Shown here piece after piece: positions 3,197 through 40,610 of a stretch of DNA of 64,000 nucleotides; the stretch's first letter is position 1; the number at the start of each line of letters is the position of its first letter. Source of the DNA: Thecamonas trahens ATCC 50062 (lineage: Eukaryota > Protista > Apusomonadida); assembly GCF_000142905.1 (NCBI RefSeq), contig NW_013657674.1:218709-282708 (forward strand). Direction: 5' to 3'. The position numbers and the translations under genes are program-made. Under the pieces are notes generated by a model. It saw nothing but the letters and a program-made list of their open reading frames with translations. It was not told where the DNA came from and did not search any database.

Positions 3197-4540
3197 ATGT
3201 TCTCCCTCGCCCGGACGACCCTCACCGCCTCTGGCGCGGTCATGCGGCCTGTGCTCGCCACCGCTGTACGTCCCTACCCTGCACCTCCCCCCCCCCCCCT
3301 TCTGCCCCCCATGACTGTCACTGCTACAGATGGCGGCACCGGCGCGGTCGCTCAACCTCCACGAGTACCAGTCGAAGGAGCTGATGCAGAAGGCTGGGCT
3401 CTACATTCAGCAGTTTGGCGTGGCAGAGACGCCCGAGGAGGCCGAGAAGGTGGCGGCCAACATGGTGTTCGACGAGGGCTCCGAGTTTGTCATCAAGGCC
3501 ATGGTCCACGCAGGTGGGCGCGGCAAGGGTGTGTTCACCAACGGATTCAAGGGCGGTGTCCACCTCGCCAAGACGCCCGAGGAGGTCCGCGAGCTGGGCC
3601 TCAACATGCTCGGCCACTCGCTGGTGACCAAGCAGACGCCGGCTGAGGGCGTGCACGTCGGCAAAATCATGGTGGCCGAGGCGCTGGACATTGACGAGGA
3701 GAAGTACTTTGCCATCCTCATGGACCGCGAGTACAACGGCCCGGTCCTCATCGCGTCGCCGCAGGGCGGCATGGACATCGAGGCAGTGGCCGAGGAGACT
3801 CCGGACGCCATCATGTACGAGCCGGTCAACATCAACACCGGGCTCACCGACGAGCAGCTGCAGCGCGTGGTCAAGTTCCTCAAGTTCAAGACCGAGACTC
3901 ACGAAGAGTCCGCCAAGGAGCAGATCGCCAAGCTCTACGACATGTTCCTCGACGTCGACGCCACCCAGATCGAGATCAACCCGCTCGGGACGCTCGAGAC
4001 TGGGCGTGTGCTCTGCTTTGACGCCAAGGTCAACTTTGACCCCAACGCCGAGTTCCGCCAGAAGGACGTCTTTACCATGCACGACACGTCCGAGGACGAC
4101 CCGCGTGAGGTCGAGGCCGCCAAGTACGACCTCAACTACATCGGCATGGACGGCAACATTGGTGCCTTGTCAACGGCGCCGGTCTCGCCATGGCCACCAT
4201 GGACCAGATCGCGCTCGAGGGCGCCACGCCGGCCAACTTCCTTGACGTCGGCGGCGGCGCGACCGAGGAGCAGGTCGAGGCTGCGCTGCGCATCATCTCG
4301 TCGGACACCCAGGTCAAGGCCATCCTCGTCAACATCTTTGGCGGCATCATGCGGTGCTCGACCATCGCCAAGGGCCTCACCTCGGCCCTCGAGTCGCTCA
4401 ACCTCGACATCCCGCTCGTTGTCCGCCTCGAGGGCACCGAGGTCGAGGAGGGCAACCGCATCCTCAAGGAGTCCGGCTTTGCCATCACCACCGCCACCGA
4501 CCTCGAGGACGCCGCCAAGAAGGCCGTCGCTACCCTCTAG
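3197..4540 (+). CDS. SUCLG2: Mitochondrial succinyl-CoA ligase beta subunit (closer to GDP-forming type); exon 1 3197-3265, intron 3266-3329, single-base frameshift at ~4163
   Basis: Presequence MFSLARTT... splices in phase 0 (GTACGT..CTACAG) to 'LNLHEYQSK', 'AGGRGKG', 'DAKVNFD'. GNIG|[12 protein letters not shown] needs one extra base; the C-terminal 'ANFLDVGGG', '[10 protein letters not shown]' lie in ORF 4190-4540. Confidence 0.93.
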
Positions 4541-26161: not shown

Positions 26162-29100
26162 ATGAGTACTGACCGCCGCCGAGGCCGGGTGGTGCGGCAG
26201 TCGCGCAAGTCGCGGTCCATGGTCTGGGTCGTCAAGTCGCCAGCATGCCTCACGTGCCGGGTACCCCTCGGCCTCCGCCACCGCAAGCACCACTGCTACG
26301 TCTGCGGTGAGCTCTTCTGCGCTTCTTGTGTGGCATACACTGTCCATGACTCTGGCAATGATGGCGTGCGCACAAAAGCTCGCCAAGCCTGTGCCGTCTG
26401 CTGGCTAACAGATGCCCGCCAGGAAGCCATTGTCCTCCGCGACCGCCTCCATGCCGCCGCCGCCGCATTTGCGTCGTCCATGGCCTTCCCTCCCTGGCCG
26501 GACGAGATCGATGTCGAGGCGCATGCCTTGGCGGATGATGCGGATGGCAACAGCGCCGAAGCCGATGTCAAAGCCGCGGATGGGCCCGCCGATGTTGGGG
26601 CCGATGCACAGGCCGCTGCCCGCGCCGCACGTGCCACCTACAAGGCCAAGCGCTCGTCGCGGCTCTCGGTTTCAACCACGTCGCTCAACGTGCCACCTGG
26701 CCCGGGCACGCCATGCCTTCCAATCGAGCACCTGGCGCTGCCGGGTGCGTCGATCGCCATCGAGGACGCCGGCTCGGACCTCGGCTCGCTCTCCGACTCG
26801 GACGACGGCTCGGTGGCGGCATCGCGGCCGCCATCGTGGGGCGCCTCGTCATCGTCCTCGATTAGCATGATCGGTGATACCGAGCCTGGGCCGTCGGGCG
26901 AAGAGCCGCCCGCCAGTGGAGACGAGCCATTGCCGCCGGCAGCCGCCAGCGTCGAGGATGGCTCTGCCAGCCAACCCAGGTCTGAGTTTCTGCAGCGGAT
27001 CTTCTTCACCCTCTCGGTCTCGGAGCTCCACTTTCCCCGTCACCGCATACCGGATTCTATGCCATGATCATGTACTCCAAGCCATGGAACTCGACCGGGC
27101 CGTCGACTCGGTATGTCGAGGCTGCGCGGACCGAGGTCATCTCGCGGGCTGGCCACGTCAACTCGGGCTCGTTTGCGACCTTGCTGTCTCTGCACAGGCC
27201 CAGAGCCGAGGAGCCGTTTGACCTCTCCCCACTCAAGTTTGCGGTGTACATGTCGTCGGGCGACAACCTCAAGCTGCCGTCCGAAGAGGATCTCGTGGGC
27301 GCCATCCGGGTCTCGGGCACCATGCAGCCGGGCCAGCACGCGACGACGGCGCTCAAGACCCGCCGCGGAGTCGAAGTCGGCCAGCTGAACATCCGCGCCG
27401 AAGGCGTTGCACCGCCGTTTGACTCGCCATCTCTTGTCGACCACCGGTACAAGTGGGGCGGACTGTATGTTCACGAGACGCTCGAGGCGTCGTCGTTTGC
27501 GTTTACAACCGCCCAGGCTGCGCTCATTCTTGCTGGTCAGCGGCACGTGCTTGACCTGCGAGTTGCGCTCAAGGCTGCTGAGGCGACGCTTCGTGAGGTG
27601 CAGGCGGAGGCCGCCGAGTTTGACGAGGCTTGCGCCGCTGGGCGTGCCAAGGCCAAAGACCGGCCGCGGTCGCTCTCGGCGCGGGTCCGGGACGCGCTTC
27701 TTGATGGGGTCCGCATCTTTGAGCACTTGTACTCGATCCGGATTGGGCTCGCAGCAGCTGAAGCTGGAGCGGTGGACAGCAAGCCGTTCAAGCCATCGAC
27801 AGCCAAGTCCGACGTCAGTCTCCGGTTTGTGGCCACCAACCTCCACGTGCAGCGCATGTCCGTGGGCACGACGCTGGGTCGGCCGCTGCGGACATACTGC
27901 ACGGTGACGGTGGGCGCGCCGGCAGATCACGCGTCTGGCTTCAAAGACGGCGGCGGGATCCGCCAGCTGGAGGCCAAACTCATGGACGCCATCCGGGCGT
28001 CAGCGTCGGGGCCAGCTGACGTCGATCTTCAGGAGCTGCAGTGGCGGTTGCTGGCCCGGCGCGACGCTGCACAGGCGCAAGCACTCGCAGCGCTTGTCAC
28101 CGCCTTTGTCGCCAACTTTAACAACGCAGTCCGGGAATTGCTCTACCCGGGCTCGCCAGAGGCCAGGCTGGCTGCCGAAGCTAGCCTCGACCTCCTTGCC
28201 CGGTTTGGTTTTGTCTTTGAGCTCGAGTCGCTGCTATCGACTGCTGGCTCAGAGCTGGGCATGCTGGGCGATGCCGAGGCGGCGATGAGATCGCTTCGCT
28301 CCGTCCGCATCTTTCTCTACCGGTGGGAGGATGCGCACAAAGCCGGCGAGACGGTACCGGTGCCCAGCGATGCTGCCGAGGTTGATCTGCTCGGCTCGGA
28401 CACCGAATGGATTGGCATTGTGCCGTGCCTTGTCGACGTCCGGCACTCAGACCTGAGCCGGTCGGCGGCCGAGGTTCGCCTCTGGCTCTCAATGCCTCCC
28501 GGCGTAGAAGAACAGCCCGAGTACCCAGATGCGCTGCGGCGGGTACTGAATGCGGCGACGAGTGGTGGAATTGAGGTCTTCCCGATTGTCTTTACGCAGG
28601 GTATCAACGAGAAGCAGTCGATGGCCAACTTTGGCACAGCGCACCCGATGCTCTCGTCGCTCTTTGGCAGCTCTGTGGCGCAGAGCGAGATCAACAACGA
28701 AAACCTGGCGCAGCTGGCGTCAGTGTATGCCAAGGTGCGCTCGGCGCTCGAGGCGCGGGTTGCCGACGGCGACTTGCTTGTCGCGCCGCTCGACGAGCTC
28801 GACGCCCGCCTGGCGCAGATCAGCGAGACTGTGGCGCTGGCGGCGGTCGGCGGAAAGAAGAACGTCTCGGTTCTCACCCAGACTTCGCGTTTTGTGCGGA
28901 GGCTCGGAGGCGGGCGGGCGACGTGTTGCAAGTCAGCTAAGGACCGAACGTCGATGGCGGTGACGCTCGAGCAGGCCTCCCTCCTCGCCGACAATCATGG
29001 GCTAGAGACCGAAATCCATGCAATGTGTACGGTGATGCGTGCGCTCGGCGTGCGTCGCGAAAACGCGTTTGTCAACGCCGGCCGGCGCAAGTACGCGTTC

Positions 29101-29175
29101 AACGCCTTCCAGGCCATGCTCCTCCCGTCGGCGTACAAGCCGCCGGCCGGCGCCGGCGGTTCGGTCGTCTCGTAA
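26162..29175 (+). CDS. INPP4: FYVE + C2-like + inositol polyphosphate 4-phosphatase; split into two frames at ~27050-27064
   Basis: FYVE 'RKHHCYVCGELFCASC'; INPP4 motifs 'FKPSTAK', 'FVATNLHVQ', 'TVGAPADH', 'ESLLSTAGSELGML', 'TQGINEKQ'; catalytic 'CKSAKDRTSM'. Confidence 0.88.
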
Positions 29176-35002: not shown

Positions 35003-36454
35003 TCAGCCAATGGTGTGCAGCTCGAGGGCACCGGCGACAGAGCCGAGGACGGCGGGAGGCAAGCGGCCGGGGAGTCGCAGCAGGGCGCTAAAGTGAAGCG
35101 ATGGTGGAGCTGATACGGACGCCTTTGGCGATCGGCTTGCGAGCTCGGTGAGCGGGACGAGGCCGACCGCGTCGACAACGGCCTTGACCCGCGAGACAAT
35201 GCGGACGTGCATGGTTAGCTCGGCGGCTTGTGCCGGCGTCACCATGTCGGCAAGCGGGAGGCGCGGCGCCTGCCATTGCGAAGATCGTGCGTCGGTGACC
35301 GAGAGCAGCGTCGCCTCAAACCAGGCAAAGCCGGTCTCGTCGCGGACGCACGCCACGCCACCATCAACGTACGCCGCGAGCAGGCCAAACTGCAAACGGC
35401 ACTTGCCCGGCAGAGTGTCTTCCAGAACGGCCACAACGCTCGGCGGAGACGGCACGATGGTCAGCCGCGAGCGGCAGTGTGGCGAGAGCCGGGCCGGAAG
35501 CGCCGCTTTCTTGGCGTTGCGGATGATGGCGAGAGCCTCCTCCAGCGACAGTTGCTGTTCAGAGACCGGCGCCAGGTGGCCAGCTCGCGGCGGCGTGCTA
35601 TGCGCCGGCGGCATGCTCGCCACCGAGACCGAGTCATGCTGGACCGACCGCTCAAAGACGCCGTCGGCATCCGAGATGTCCGAGTCGGTATCCTCGCTTC
35701 GGCGCGCGGCGCGATGCCGCACCAACTCGACAGACCGCTCAAAAACAATCGACGCCGGGTCGTCAAGGTCGTCATCGTCGCCGACCCATGACGACTCGAC
35801 TGAGCGCTCAAAGACGAGCTCGCGGCTGGCGCCGGCCGACCGAGGCGACCGCGGCGTACGCGGCGCCGACCGCGGCGACGACCGTGCTGACCTAGGTGAC
35901 CGCGGCGTCCGCATGGCTGAGACCACAGTGAGCACTCCGGGATCGTCATCGGCCTCGGCCTCGACCGTTCGCTCAAAGATCATGGCAGGTGTCGACGAGC
36001 CAAGCCGCCCGCAGCTCGACGTGCCACCGTCCACGGCATCGTCATACACGCGCGTCCGCTCCGACAGCGTCGCCACCGTCGAGCTGAAATCAATCGAACC
36101 GTGATGCGCCATACTCGACGAGCAGCCGGCTGACGTCGCTCTCCCGCGTCCTGCGCCGGTCGATGCCTGCGAGGCCTGAGAGTCATTGAGCGGGATGTTG
36201 CCGCTGCCCTTCCCCCACCGCTGCTGCGCCTGGTTTGGCGCCTGCACAAACTCAATCTCCGCCACAGAGAGCTCGTCGGAGTCCAGCACTGACGAGTACT
36301 CGGCGAGGCCGTGGGGCCTGCTGCCTGGCCCACTCTCGGCTCCACTCTGTGCTTCCCCAGCTCCGGCCGCCTCTGGCCCCCCGACAGCTCCCTCGCTCCT
36401 GCCCTCCTCGTCCTCGGCCTGGGCCTCGGGAGGCGGACGCCGGCAGCACCACAT
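35003..36454 (-). CDS. Uncharacterised protein with N-terminal MWCC and four FER(S/T)V repeats
   Basis: Open frame from ATG 36454 (MWCCRRPP); repeats IFERTVE/VFERSVE/VFERSVE/VFERSVQ; globular-looking C-terminus. Confidence 0.6.
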   Translation of the reverse strand: MWCCRRPPPEAQAEDEEGRSEGAVGGPEAAGAGEAQSGAESGPGSRPHGLAEYSSVLDSDELSVAEIEFVQAPNQAQQRWGKGSGNIPLNDSQASQASTGAGRGRATSAGCSSSMAHHGSIDFSSTVATLSERTRVYDDAVDGGTSSCGRLGSSTPAMIFERTVEAEADDDPGVLTVVSAMRTPRSPRSARSSPRSAPRTPRSPRSAGASRELVFERSVESSWVGDDDDLDDPASIVFERSVELVRHRAARRSEDTDSDISDADGVFERSVQHDSVSVASMPPAHSTPPRAGHLAPVSEQQLSLEEALAIIRNAKKAALPARLSPHCRSRLTIVPSPPSVVAVLEDTLPGKCRLQFGLLAAYVDGGVACVRDETGFAWFEATLLSVTDARSSQWQAPRLPLADMVTPAQAAELTMHVRIVSRVKAVVDAVGLVPLTELASRSPKASVSAPPSLHFSALLRLPGRLPPAVLGSVAGALELHTIG

Positions 36455-36626
36455 AGTGTATGCTCGGGGAGTGAGTGAGTGGGAGAGAGAAACTGTGTCG
36501 ACAAGTCCTTGCTTCCCACCTGCAGCTCCTTGGAAGGCTCCGTACGGGTGGTTGTCGCGCTGCGGTAGGTGACGCAGCGCGTGGCGGGACGGGCCAAACC
36601 CCGTCAGCAACAACAGAGGTGGGAGT

Positions 36627-37796
36627 TCATTGCCGGGCGACGCCTCGCCCGTCGGGGATGAGAGCGACGAGCTCGTCAAAGTTAGCCTTCCAAGCCGCAG
36701 CGTTGGCCTCGGCGGCTGCGTCCTGGGCTGCAACGCGCTCGAGAAGCGCCTCGTTGTTGGCGAGGAGCGCAGCGTGGGCCTCCTTAAGCATGGCGGTGGC
36801 GGCGTGCATGTCGTCGCGGGCGACGGCAGCGCGCTCGAGCTCGGTAGTGAGCGCGGCAATCTGACGATTGAGCGCCTCGACCGTGGCTGAGAGCTGGGCC
36901 GAGTGCGCCTTTTCACGCGCCGCTGCAGCCTGGAGATGGTCGATCTCGGCGCAGAGCGCTTCGGCGTTGGCGGCCGGTGGCGCCGAGGCCATCGCTGACG
37001 GGGGCGGCTGGCCGAGCGAGTCGATGTGGCAGAGGAGTGCCGACTTAAACTGGGCACGAAGCGCCGAGGCCGACTGTGGACCATTGGCGAGGACGTCCAT
37101 GAGGGCATCGACGACATCGTCGACCGGCTCCCGCGGCACAGGCCCGGTCCGCCGCGGCGACGGCACGAACACCAATGCCCGCTGGGTCGACGACGGCGCC
37201 GGCGGCAGCGCCTGTCGCGGTGCAGGCGTTGGCGACTCGATCAGCGCCGAAAGAAGGGACGGCGACGGTGGCGGGTGTGGGCGCGAGATGCGCGAGGTGC
37301 GCGAGGCTGTCGCTGTCCGCGTCTGCAGTGGTGGGGAGACAGGCGCCGGCGTCGGCGGCGCCAGCCGGGCGGCGGCACGGCGCTCCGACTCGCGCACGTC
37401 ACGCTCGTCGAGGCGGGTGAGGTTTGGAAAGGCGGCAATGACCCGCAGCCGATACGACGGTGCAACCTTGGAGACCGGGTTGAGCCGGAGGTCGAGCTCG
37501 CGGAGGGCCGGGAGCGCAGCGAGCGGAGCGAGCGCGTCGAGATCCGGAAGCCGGTTGTAGTACAGATTGAGCTTGCGAAGGTGCGGAAAGGAGGACGAGG
37601 CGAGCGGGTCGATCGAGGTCAGAGCGTTGCGGGAGAGATCCAGGACTTCGATGCCGGTAAAGGCGTCCAGGGCGTCGCCGAGCTCGGTCACCTTTTCATC
37701 GTGGATGCCCGGCAAGACCAGTGAGCGGATCTGGCTGGTATCTGCCGAGTCCGGCAAGAGGATGCGGGAACAGACCCATGCGTGGTCAATGCGCAT
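36627..37796 (-). CDS. CEP72: Centrosomal protein CEP72/LRRC36-like (LRR + LRRcap + C-terminal coiled coil)
   Basis: 'LDLSRNAL', 'LNLYYNRL', 'LDLRLNPVSKVAPSYRLRVIAAFPNLTRLDERDVRESERRAA' closely follow the CEP72 N-terminus; coiled coil 'LKEAHAALLANNEAL'. Confidence 0.8.
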   Translation of the reverse strand: MRIDHAWVCSRILLPDSADTSQIRSLVLPGIHDEKVTELGDALDAFTGIEVLDLSRNALTSIDPLASSSFPHLRKLNLYYNRLPDLDALAPLAALPALRELDLRLNPVSKVAPSYRLRVIAAFPNLTRLDERDVRESERRAAARLAPPTPAPVSPPLQTRTATASRTSRISRPHPPPSPSLLSALIESPTPAPRQALPPAPSSTQRALVFVPSPRRTGPVPREPVDDVVDALMDVLANGPQSASALRAQFKSALLCHIDSLGQPPPSAMASAPPAANAEALCAEIDHLQAAAAREKAHSAQLSATVEALNRQIAALTTELERAAVARDDMHAATAMLKEAHAALLANNEALLERVAAQDAAAEANAAAWKANFDELVALIPDGRGVARQ

Positions 37797-37998
37797 GGTT
37801 GCTGCTGCTCGAGTTGGGCGCGGCGTTCTCCTGGCTCGGTGTGTCGGGCAGGGCGGCAAACTTGGTCCTCAGCTCGGCGGCAGCGGTCTGGAAAGCCTCA
37901 ACCTGTGCGTCGGCTTCGGCAAGCAAGCGGGCAACCTGTTTCTCACAGGCCTCCTTTAGGTACTCCTCCACCGTAGTAGCCTTGGGTTGGCCAGACAT
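37786..37998 (-). CDS. 70-aa helix-only Survivin/Bir1/BORI-like chromosomal passenger complex subunit candidate
   Basis: 'TTVEEYLKEACEKQVARLLAEADAQVEAFQTAAAELRTKFAAL' matches the (M/T)T(V/L)E(E/Q)(W/Y)...E..I..F pattern of the C-terminal helix of fungal Bir1 and plant BORI; coding-like codons. Confidence 0.6.
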   Translation of the reverse strand: MSGQPKATTVEEYLKEACEKQVARLLAEADAQVEAFQTAAAELRTKFAALPDTPSQENAAPNSSSSNHAH

Positions 37999-38019
37999 TC
38001 ACCGTGTGGCGCCAAGTGT

Positions 38020-38210
38020 ACCCCCTCTACACACACACACCGTCTCCCCTTGCTGCTTCCCGCCTCCCAGGAAAAGGTCGTGAACTTGAAACCCGCCTTG
38101 GCGCCAAACCAGCCCGATCGATCGCGCGCGCGCAAATGGCCGACAAGCTACGGCACACGCCGCCTCGCCACAGGCAGCGTCACAAGTCTTCTTGCAACCG
38201 TTGTCTCGCA
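38020..38210. promoter_or_regulatory. Bidirectional promoter with E2F-like and MYB/MSA-like sites
   Basis: TGGCGCCAA 38027-35, TTCCCGCC 38057-64, TTGAA 38086-90, TTGGCGCCAAA 38098-108, GCGCGCAAA 38127-35, CAACCGTTG 38195-203. Confidence 0.45.
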
Positions 38211-38286
38211 GGAGACGTCCACTCTCTCTCTCTCTCTCTGGAGACTTCCCATCACCCAAAGGTCTAAAATAACTGCGCCTTGCGCC

Positions 38287-40610
38287 ATGGAGCGAAGGCT
38301 GACCCAGGTCCGGAGGGACGAGATCCTGCGCCGGTTGGAAGACGAGCGCAAGGCCCGCCGGGCAAGGAAGGAGACAGGCGACAGCGCGTCGAGCGAGGAC
38401 CAACCGGCCAAGACAAGCACACCCCGTAGCAGTGAGGCGGCTCCGCGTGATGCTCGGAGGGATGCGCTTGTTCAGCGCCGAGCCAAGAAAGCTGCTGCCG
38501 CCGCTGCCGCCGCTGCCGCCGCCGCCACTGACCAAGCCGGCCAAGCCGGCCTGAACGCCGACCTGGGCGCCAAGCCTCAGTCCTCATCCGCATGAGCCCA
38601 CCGCACCGCCGTCACGTCCACTTTGATGACGACGCTGGCGGCGATGGTAGTGATGGCAGCAGCTCCGGCGGCGCAGGCGCGGAGAACGGCTACTTTGCGT
38701 TCTCGTCGCTCTCGGGTGCAGGGTCGGGCAACGGCGAGTCCGATGCTGACGGGCGACTGGACGAGCCGGCACCGCTGCCGCCACACATGATGACGATGAC
38801 GCAGCCGTGGCTTTCACCGATGGCGGGCAAAAGAGCAAGTCCAATGCACGGGCCGCCGGCCAACACGGCAGCGCGGCGGTCGCGGCACTCCAAAGACAAG
38901 GTGCGGCTCGAGGTCGAGGCTGAGTTTGAGGAGCAGCACACGTTCCGGCCGCAACTCTCGACGTCATCGAAGCGAATTGATACAGCGAGCAGGGAGGAGC
39001 GGCTGGCGCGGCTGGCCGAGGACAAGTCCAAGTTGTACGTCGAGCGCGAGAAGCTGCGGCTGCAGCGCGAGCAGGACGAGGCGAAGCGGTTGGCTGCCGA
39101 GCGGAAGCGGCGATCGTCGGCGCGGCGTGCCGGCGTGCAAAAGTCGCTCAAAGGCCGGCGATCGTCCAGCTCCGAGCCGGTGCAGGAGCGGCTGTATCGT
39201 GCCGGTGTCGAGGCTGCCGAAAGCCGACGGGAGCGGCTTGTGGCCGCGCAGTCTGAGCTCCCGCAGCAGTGCACGTTCAAGCCGCGGGTGAGCAAGAAGA
39301 AGGCAAGCAGGGACTCGTCGCGGGTCCCACTGTACAAGCGAGTGACTCAAGTCCAACGGTCGAAGAACGCGCGGCTACACAAGCTGCGGATGGAGGTGAT
39401 GGAAGGCGACAGCAATCTCACGTTCAAGCCGCAGACCAACAGCAAGCGGCGGACAACAAGCAATCGCAAGGCACCAGTCTTTGACCGGCTCGCCAACGCG
39501 GCGCAGGTTGCCGAGGCACGCAAGAAGAAGCTCGAGCAGGATCTGGAGCAAGAGCGGGCAGAGCAGTACACGTTCAAGCCGAAGATCTCGGCGCGATCCA
39601 AGGCGCTCGTGGCCACGTCGACGGAGCTTGGCGGCGACGCGTTTCTGGAGCGCCAGAAGCGTTACGAAGAGAGGTCGCGGCGTATGAAGGCTGAGGCGCA
39701 GGCCGAGGCTGAGGCCCAGCTCGCCGAAGCTTTCCAGCCGGAAATCAATGCGCTTCCGAGCGAGGTCCGCCGTAGCCGCGAGGAGCCATCTGATCCTGGT
39801 GAGAGCTTCCTGGAGCGGTGCGAGCGGATGGCGGTGAAGGACTCGGCGCGTGCGCAGCTGTTGCGGGCGAACGCCGAGGAGGAGTACTACTCGCAGTTTA
39901 CCTTTCAGCCCAAGATCAATCCTGCGTCCCGGGCGCTGGCCAAGGACCGCTCGTTTGCGCAGCTGGCCGAATCGACAGCGCCCAAGGCAGCGGCGGCCGG
40001 CGACGCGGTCGAAGCGGCATTTTCCGAGGCTCATCCCTTCAAGCCCAAGCTCAATTCCACGTCGGCGCGGGCCAAGTCATACTTGCGTGACACGTCGAAC
40101 CTCATGGCCCGCATCGAGGCGGACCGACGGGCCAAGGAAAAGGCGCTCGCAGCCGCACGCCTCGAGCGTGAGGCTGCCGAGATGGAAGAGTGCTCGTTTG
40201 CACCGGCGCGTGTGACAGCGTCAACCTCGCCAGAGGCAAACCGGGCCAGGCCCGTCCAGGTCAAGGGTCTTGATAGATTCATGGAGCTGCAGCGGATGCG
40301 AGAGGCCAAGGAGGCCGAAAAGCGCGAGCTCGAGCGGCGGGCGTTCTCTGTCTCACACGCCGCACTTGTCGGGCGTCCGCCGACTGCCGATCGCTCGCCA
40401 CCGGTCGGCAGCCATGCCGATGTCATCTATGCCGCGCGTGCGCCGGCGCCCTCGGTCCACGCCCAGCACAAGCCCAAGCCGCGGCCGCGGTCTGCGTACG
40501 TGCCGACCACCAACGCATCGCGACAGCGCGAGCTCATTCGCAAGATTCTTGCCGACGAGGATCTAGTCCCCATCGGCGACGACGACGCGTTTATGTTTGA
40601 CGAAGAGTAA
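38287..40610 (+). CDS. Basic coiled-coil protein with about 8 (T/P)FxP(x)I/L repeats, putative microtubule-associated; frame break at ~38591
   Basis: HTFRPQL, CTFKPRV, LTFKPQT, YTFKPKI, AFQPEI, FTFQPKI, HPFKPKL, CSFAP. The upstream ORF 38287-38595 (MERRLTQVRRDEILRRL) overlaps ORF 38592-40610 at ATGA. Confidence 0.72.

Follow-up and report, generated by a model that had tools for sequence, protein, structure and literature searches.

Here, we provide evidence that a 70-codon ORF at the start of the CEP72 gene of the apusomonad Thecamonas trahens is an overlooked gene, and that its product very probably belongs to the Survivin family as a protein consisting of little else than the family helix. 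We further propose that this ORF and CEP72 are carried on a shared mRNA that is read by leaky scanning, a reading to which we assign a rough probability of 0.55. Positions given below are those of the window, i.e., the whole 64,000-nucleotide stretch of T. trahens ATCC 50062 DNA that was analysed.

The small ORF and its locus

The ORF map confirms the arrangement that a preliminary description of this DNA had read from the letters, with the TGA of the small ORF located 10 nt past the CEP72 ATG and in another frame (Table 1). The CEP72 frame is shifted by one base relative to the small ORF. Immediately 5' of the small ORF ATG stands a TGA in the same frame, and no upstream extension of the ORF is therefore possible. 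The divergent spacer presumably holds the promoter and the 5' leader of the pair. It contains a single site of the E2F-like motif TTTSSCGC, which was not enriched in a scan of the window.

Table 1. Positions of the small ORF, CEP72 and associated elements in the window
Feature	Position	Strand	Remarks
Small ORF, 70 codons + TGA	37786..37998	-	Product very probably a helix-only Survivin/BORI-type protein; no entry in the public proteome
Ends of the small ORF	ATG 37998-37996, TGA 37788-37786	-	From the ORF map
Conserved amphipathic helix, codons 10-49 of the small ORF	37852..37971	-	Aligns with the Survivin C-terminal helix
CEP72 orthologue, 389 codons	36627..37796 (ATG 37796-37794)	-	N-terminal LRR domain and C-terminal coiled coil
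Overlap of 11 nt, small ORF end / CEP72 start	37786..37796	-	Different frames; same in contig L002
Start context of the small ORF, CGGTGA ATG T	37995..38004	-	Among the region's weakest
Start context of CEP72, GCAACC ATG C	37793..37802	-	Close to consensus
Spacer of 288 bp, common to the divergently oriented gene	37999..38286	.	Sole non-coding DNA upstream of the pair
TTTGGCGC (E2F-like) site	38101-38108		Single copy in the upstream spacer

The overlap is not a product of the assembly. A metagenome contig (L002, ENA ERZ27245236) matches the small ORF and the overlap base for base. It derives from a different strain, which departs from the window by 4 nt in a (GA)n tract, by a SNP and, in the neighbouring gene, by three indels (13, 18 and 15 nt). 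The earlier reservation that one base fewer in the raw reads would fuse the two ORFs falls away with the unchanged junction in this independent assembly, and the identical junction rules out an assembly frameshift that splits a single ORF.

Codon usage in the frame of the small ORF scores 0.28 bits per codon, the best value of the six frames, with the other five at or below zero. Real coding windows average 0.37 bits per codon, and the small ORF falls at their 34th percentile. Synteny in relatives, to which the preliminary description had looked for support, was found as well. Contig L001, from a distant relative, encodes a homologous ORF of 86 codons on the same strand and directly upstream of its CEP72. 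The matching part is the N-terminal end of that ORF, at 48% identity over about 44-48 residues (BLASTP E 3e-14). The syntenic homologue in a distant relative and the coding-like codon usage show that the small ORF is a genuine T. trahens gene that annotation has passed over. Gene finders did miss it, as had been anticipated, and the NCBI model AMSG_01553 begins at the CEP72 ATG. The 70-aa protein is listed from metagenome sources only and is absent from NCBI and EukProt sources, which means that the reference proteome lacks it.

Identification of the downstream ORF as a CEP72 orthologue, also proposed previously, is borne out by its Pfam matches and its best named relatives. LRR_4, LRR_9 and LRR_8 were matched at residues 33-144, with weak coiled-coil-type matches at residues 276-376, and vertebrate CEP72 is the closest named protein (E 1e-26). 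Clustered at 90% identity, the downstream protein falls together with XP_013761603.1 / KNC54703.1 (AMSG_01553 of T. trahens ATCC 50062). This 858-aa model joins the 389-codon ORF to the next downstream ORF via a predicted GT-AG intron.

In the distant relative, the CEP72 orthologue (P0003) is 38% identical to that of T. trahens and occurs on L001 and L004-L007, which are marine metagenome contigs from Tara Oceans and other samples. The CEP72 N-termini of T. trahens and L001 align from residues 16 and 17, respectively. T. trahens has an inter-ORF distance of -11 nt, and L001, L004, L005, L006 and L007 share one of +38 nt; the L001 pair does not overlap, as its small ORF ends in TAA and is followed by 38 nt before CEP72. 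The divergent neighbour gene and the dNK gene are likewise syntenic between T. trahens and L001. Linkage of the helix gene to CEP72 was found in these two lineages only. Scans of metagenomes with the helix alignment and with the CEP72 alignment yielded no further loci, and outside these lineages the helix gene and CEP72 are not neighbours.

Membership in the Survivin/BORI helix family

Searches that started from one or two sequences were uninformative. With the single 70-aa sequence, phmmer against PDB gave no match, Pfam returned noise only, with neither a BIR nor an FHA domain, and the ESM Atlas returned generic single helices only. A word-indexed protein search retrieved only the query itself and, with a two-sequence alignment, only the L001 species. 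Survivin was not reached by a two-sequence profile searched against PDB. An FHA domain would not fit into the 70-aa protein, which is too small for one and is enclosed by the in-frame stop upstream and CEP72 downstream.

The family became apparent with a profile (A3) built from the T. trahens and L001 helices and searched against 1.84 billion representative proteins. It matched about 15 short proteins (59-116 aa) along almost the full length of the helix (E 4.5e-6 to 1e-3), including one from the glaucophyte Cyanophora paradoxa. The members share the pattern (M/T)-T-V-E-E-Y-L, then C-E-x-Q-V, L, H, I-x-x-F and A-x-x-V-R-x-x-L. The same profile found protein P0019 at E 8.7e-6, which aligns with the T. 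trahens protein over 44 aa at 45% identity (BLASTP E 5e-11). P0019 is the final ORF piece of a gene on metagenomic locus L015; two BIR domains (55 and 53 bits) are encoded in the pieces upstream of it, and the gene is of the Bir1/Survivin type. L015 is not close to T. trahens, given that the ERO1 proteins of the two share only 31% identity, and this over a short stretch.

A second profile (A7), composed of 16 helix-only members with P0019 excluded, was searched against 177,635 PDB sequences. Human and mouse Survivin accounted for the top 11 matches at E 1.6e-4 to 3e-3, and the next match followed at E 0.03. The alignment to Survivin residues 86-141, the C-terminal helix, is gapless. A 17-member profile gave the same outcome against PDB. 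The match to Survivin is significant only with the 16-17-member family profile, and sequence identity to human Survivin is low.

The family-wide conservation pattern agrees with this assignment. The conserved helix positions are V10, E11, Y13, L14, C18, L25, F36, A40 and R44. Conservation across the family stands at 88-94% for V10, Y13 and L14, whose counterparts in human Survivin are L98, F101 and L102; this part of Survivin is described as the surface where Borealin docks (PMC2568024). From the family alignment, AlphaFold2 predicts that residues 10-49 form a single helix (pLDDT 96-98) between disordered ends, and the hydrophobic periodicity and moment of the helix peak at 100 degrees. Taken together, the A3 and A7 profile matches, the link through P0019 and the AlphaFold helix support the earlier reading of the small protein as a helix-only Survivin/BORI member without BIR or FHA.

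The preliminary description had additionally likened the 'QENAAP' tail to a KEN-type degron, which did not hold up. KEN and RxxL are absent from both the T. trahens and the L001 protein and their tails do not align; with the motifs absent and the tail not conserved, a KEN-box or D-box APC/C degron in the small protein was rejected.

Putative passenger-complex partners and known Survivins

The T. trahens genome encodes both INCENP and Borealin. INCENP, located at L013:1213-5607, is 1464 aa long and has an IN-box that scores 45.9-51.8 bits. Borealin, located at L014:1599-3296, is 565 aa long, and its residues 192-245 match Nbl1_Borealin_N with 54.1-59.6 bits. A BIR domain (PF00653) was found neither in the small ORF nor in a six-frame, exon-by-exon search of the genome, the latter a weak negative with prokaryote control genomes. 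A six-frame search likewise gave no further helix-profile match elsewhere in the genome. With INCENP and Borealin encoded, no BIR and no other copy of the helix found, the small ORF is the sole candidate to take the place of Survivin in the T. trahens passenger complex. The six-frame, exon-by-exon search for Haspin returned generic kinase-level matches only. LHC and RbcS genes were not found in the genome, which fits a heterotrophic flagellate.

The small protein would represent a minimal Survivin, i.e., a 40-residue amphipathic helix with short disordered flanks and no BIR or FHA reader. Its helix would bundle with the N-terminal helices of T. trahens Borealin and INCENP and form the scaffold of the passenger complex. 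By homology to the Survivin C-terminal helix, such bundling of the 70-aa protein with Borealin and INCENP is most likely.

Among the known family members, human Survivin (BIRC5; PDB 1E31, 2QFA) matches the T-V-E-E-Y-L start of the T. trahens helix with T97-L98-G99-E100-F101-L102, and its F124, A128 and R132 match F36, A40 and R44. Unlike human Survivin, the T. trahens protein lacks a BIR domain and hence the known phospho-H3T3 reader. The fungal-type Bir1 of locus L015 is similar in its terminal helix, at the identity given above, but has its two BIR domains upstream of the helix, whereas none was found in the T. trahens gene or in the six-frame genome. Arabidopsis BORI1/2 and the helix+FHA forms of stramenopiles and haptophytes belong to the same helix family (Komaki et al. 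2022, PMC9680938), yet these proteins carry an FHA domain N- or C-terminal to the helix and the T. trahens protein carries none.

The closest counterparts are the helix-only Survivins, and here the novelty suggested by the preliminary description has to be reduced. It had treated a helix-only Survivin as unusual, but such proteins have already been described in several supergroups, and it is the helix, not the BIR domain, that defines the Survivin/BORI family (Komaki et al. 2022, PNAS, PMC9680938). The text of that study makes no mention of Thecamonas or apusomonads. Like the helix-only proteins described there, the T. trahens protein is short, has the conserved helix (about 47 residues) as its sole recognisable element, is detected by helix profiles and is encoded in the same genome as INCENP and Borealin. 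It differs from them in that its gene is unannotated and physically coupled to CEP72. What is new in T. trahens is an unannotated member of an already described helix-only Survivin family.

Apusomonads are the sister group of opisthokonts. The T. trahens lineage is informative because it is sister to the BIR-bearing opisthokonts. A reader-less Survivin in apusomonads would support the proposal of Komaki et al. that the ancestral Survivin consisted of the helix only, and would narrow the addition of the BIR domain to the opisthokont stem, unless apusomonads lost BIR.

One transcript or two

Start contexts were scored with a matrix derived from 31 window genes, applied to 1854 ATG triplets, and with a second, independent matrix, built on 55 genes from a separate 200-kb part of the contig and applied to 5344 ATGs. 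The start of the small ORF scores -4.97 bits with the first matrix (rank 6/1854 from the bottom) and -3.63 bits with the second, where it is lower than 55/55 gene starts and within the lowest 0.3% of the 5344 ATGs. The CEP72 start, in contrast, scores +3.38 bits (rank 1848/1854, about sixth from the top) and +1.74 bits (96th percentile of ATGs), respectively. The corresponding contexts in L001, -1.15 for the small ORF versus +0.24 for CEP72, point in the same direction but are milder. Between the two starts there is no AUG in any frame, neither in T. trahens nor in L001, although this depletion is not significant under a protein-preserving null (P of zero = 0.49 and 0.13). The inter-ORF distances of -11 nt and +38 nt both lie below any other credible same-strand gap in the window, the smallest of which are 69-97 nt.

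According to the model that we propose, a single mRNA with its promoter in the divergent spacer would carry the small ORF and CEP72. Most scanning ribosomes would pass over the poor AUG of the small ORF and initiate at the strong AUG of CEP72. Leaky scanning would thereby keep Survivin output at a fixed low level compared with CEP72 and place two mitotic proteins under common control. We favour a shared mRNA with leaky scanning because of the weak and strong start contexts and the conserved tight spacing; the lack of an AUG between the two starts, though not significant, fits it as well. The adjacency of the two genes as such lends it weak support, as the surrounding gene order is conserved too and is perhaps inherited rather than selected.

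The RNA fold of leader and small ORF is not unusual (z = 0.21) and gave no IRES-like structure. A search for poly(A)-signal motifs downstream of 31 stops yielded as enriched words only the reverse complements of neighbours' stop codons. In a scan for tight ORF pairs over 264 kb spurious ORFs dominate, and the many 'ATGA' gaps of -4 are artefactual, since any ATGA start makes an overlapping-frame TGA stop.

A tenable, if doubtful, alternative keeps the helix-only Survivin but assumes two separate, overlapping transcripts, with CEP72 transcription beginning within the small ORF and the transcript of the small gene ending within the CEP72 coding region. The tight spacing would then reflect mere genome compaction and inherited gene order. 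The genome is indeed compact, with the stops of one convergent pair only 6 nt apart and same-strand gaps down to the lower values given above, so that overlapping separate transcripts would be normal in T. trahens. The conserved order of the neighbouring genes, the non-significant AUG depletion and the occurrence of the helix gene on its own in other contexts outside this lineage are also in line with two transcripts. However, two transcripts leave the contrast between a very weak small-ORF and a very strong CEP72 start context without explanation, and both inter-ORF distances are smaller than the other credible same-strand gaps in the window.

Inhibitory uORFs often overlap the main start. 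The small ORF occupies such a 5'-leader position, and it could in principle be mainly a regulatory uORF that throttles CEP72 translation and encodes a peptide without function of its own. This is quite improbable, as the small peptide is more conserved than CEP72 (48% vs 38%), members of its family are encoded by genes standing alone or at the C-terminal end of a BIR gene, and it supplies the sole Survivin-type helix in a genome with INCENP and Borealin. Its very weak start would, moreover, make it a poor repressor.

A single fusion protein of Survivin helix and CEP72, made by splicing or ribosomal frameshifting, is unlikely, and we give it very little credence. Introns do occur in T. trahens (NCBI model), and removal of a 119-nt GT...AG interval (3789-3907) from L001 would bring its two ORFs into one frame. 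This interval has no counterpart in T. trahens, where there is no GT from codon 52 to the stop of the small ORF; no intron can therefore retain the helix and reach the CEP72 frame, and a model of the small ORF as exon 1 followed by an intron was rejected for want of a usable GT in this stretch. The frame offset is +1 in T. trahens versus +2 in L001, which leaves no common frameshift mechanism. In addition, the CEP72 N-termini align from residues 16/17, matching the beginning of vertebrate CEP72, and the public gene model opens at the CEP72 ATG. Finally, spurious ORFs of this size are abundant in GC-rich genomes, but a chance ORF in GC-rich non-coding DNA is effectively refuted by sequence comparison, as the protein is conserved in the syntenic ORF of a distant relative, the profile matches extend across a family and the codon usage is coding-like.

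The shared, leaky-scanned mRNA has its nearest parallel in green algae, in which leaky scanning at nuclear bicistronic loci has been demonstrated (Gallaher 2021, PMC7896298; PNAS 2025, PMC11892635). As in those bicistrons (PMC7896298, PMC11892635), a small upstream ORF is separated from the second ORF by a very short distance and lies in a different frame, the context of ORF1 is weak and that of ORF2 strong, no AUG precedes ORF2, and colinearity is conserved between species. The T. trahens locus differs in that it belongs to another supergroup, as that of an apusomonad, and in the 11-nt overlap of its ORFs, and its single transcript is a proposal from sequence.

It is tempting to extend this model, albeit tentatively, to apusomonads in general, which would then carry Survivin and CEP72 on an obligately bicistronic, leaky-scanned mRNA with the context strengths setting their ratio, the fusion of BIR and helix having taken place after the split of apusomonads and opisthokonts. 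If true, Survivin/CEP72 would be the first such nuclear bicistron in the lineage that is sister to animals and fungi, and start-context strength would determine how much of a chromosomal-passenger subunit is made relative to a centrosomal protein. The missing BIR, and possibly a missing Haspin, would in that case date the BIR-helix fusion to after the apusomonad/opisthokont split. The small ORF/CEP72 locus offers a testable candidate for a leaky-scanning bicistron outside the green algae, and it illustrates how what protist gene models treat as "5' UTRs" can conceal small functional ORFs.

Gene model of CEP72

The NCBI model AMSG_01553 fuses CEP72 to a downstream orphan ORF through a predicted GT-AG intron of ~200 nt (roughly 36434-36640). 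This fusion appears doubtful from sequence comparison, because the CEP72 orthologue on L001, a marine metagenome contig of a distant relative, terminates where the unspliced stop sits and is followed there by a different neighbour.

Features discussed in the text (window coordinates unless a contig is named)
Feature	Position	Strand	Remarks
NCBI model AMSG_01553	35003-37796	-	858 aa
Orphan ORF downstream of CEP72	35003-36454	-	second part of AMSG_01553
Palindromic E2F-like site	38101-38108	-	TTTGGCGC(CAA); divergent spacer
Divergent neighbour, two ORFs	38287-38595 and 38592-40610	+	102 and 672 codons; ATGA overlap
FYVE-domain ORF and second ORF	26162-27067 and 27064-29175	+	301 aa and 703 codons; ATGA overlap
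Two very long ORFs	G000 (T. trahens genome) C6:117879-130681	-	2481 and 1786 codons; ATGA overlap
Bir1-type gene	L015:2121-3546	+	two BIR domains and terminal helix; metagenomic or SRA contig, Logan SRR26909564

Divergent neighbour and other overlapping ORF pairs

The divergently oriented neighbour of the small ORF encodes a coiled-coil protein with TFxP-type repeats. Its L001 version is a single unbroken ORF (710 aa, 52% identical), as is that of a slightly different T. trahens strain (metagenome contig L002). Compared with the latter, a 13-nt deletion bordered by CGC microhomology shifts the frame in the window, so that the 102-codon ORF terminates where it overlaps the 672-codon ORF by ATGA. 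The deletion is either a genuine strain difference or an assembly error. The E2F-like site falls in the spacer between the divergent genes, upstream of the small ORF and ~100 nt from its ATG; over the whole window this motif shows no enrichment.

Any start that reads ATGA automatically yields a -4 nt overlap. The FYVE-domain pair may be explained by a split gene, by an intron or as a tight pair. The two very long ORFs on C6, the contig of the window, have GC3 values of 0.84 and 0.87 and are probably one giant gene interrupted by a frameshift or intron.

Haspin and BIR domains

Neither a convincing Haspin kinase (the top PF12330 match, to a generic kinase segment, scores 24.5 bits) nor a BIR domain was found in the whole genome of T. 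trahens. If these absences are real, the species may be without the entire H3T3ph pathway for centromere targeting. The Bir1-type gene on L015 is spread across several frames, presumably broken by short introns, and its terminal helix is 45% identical to that of T. trahens.
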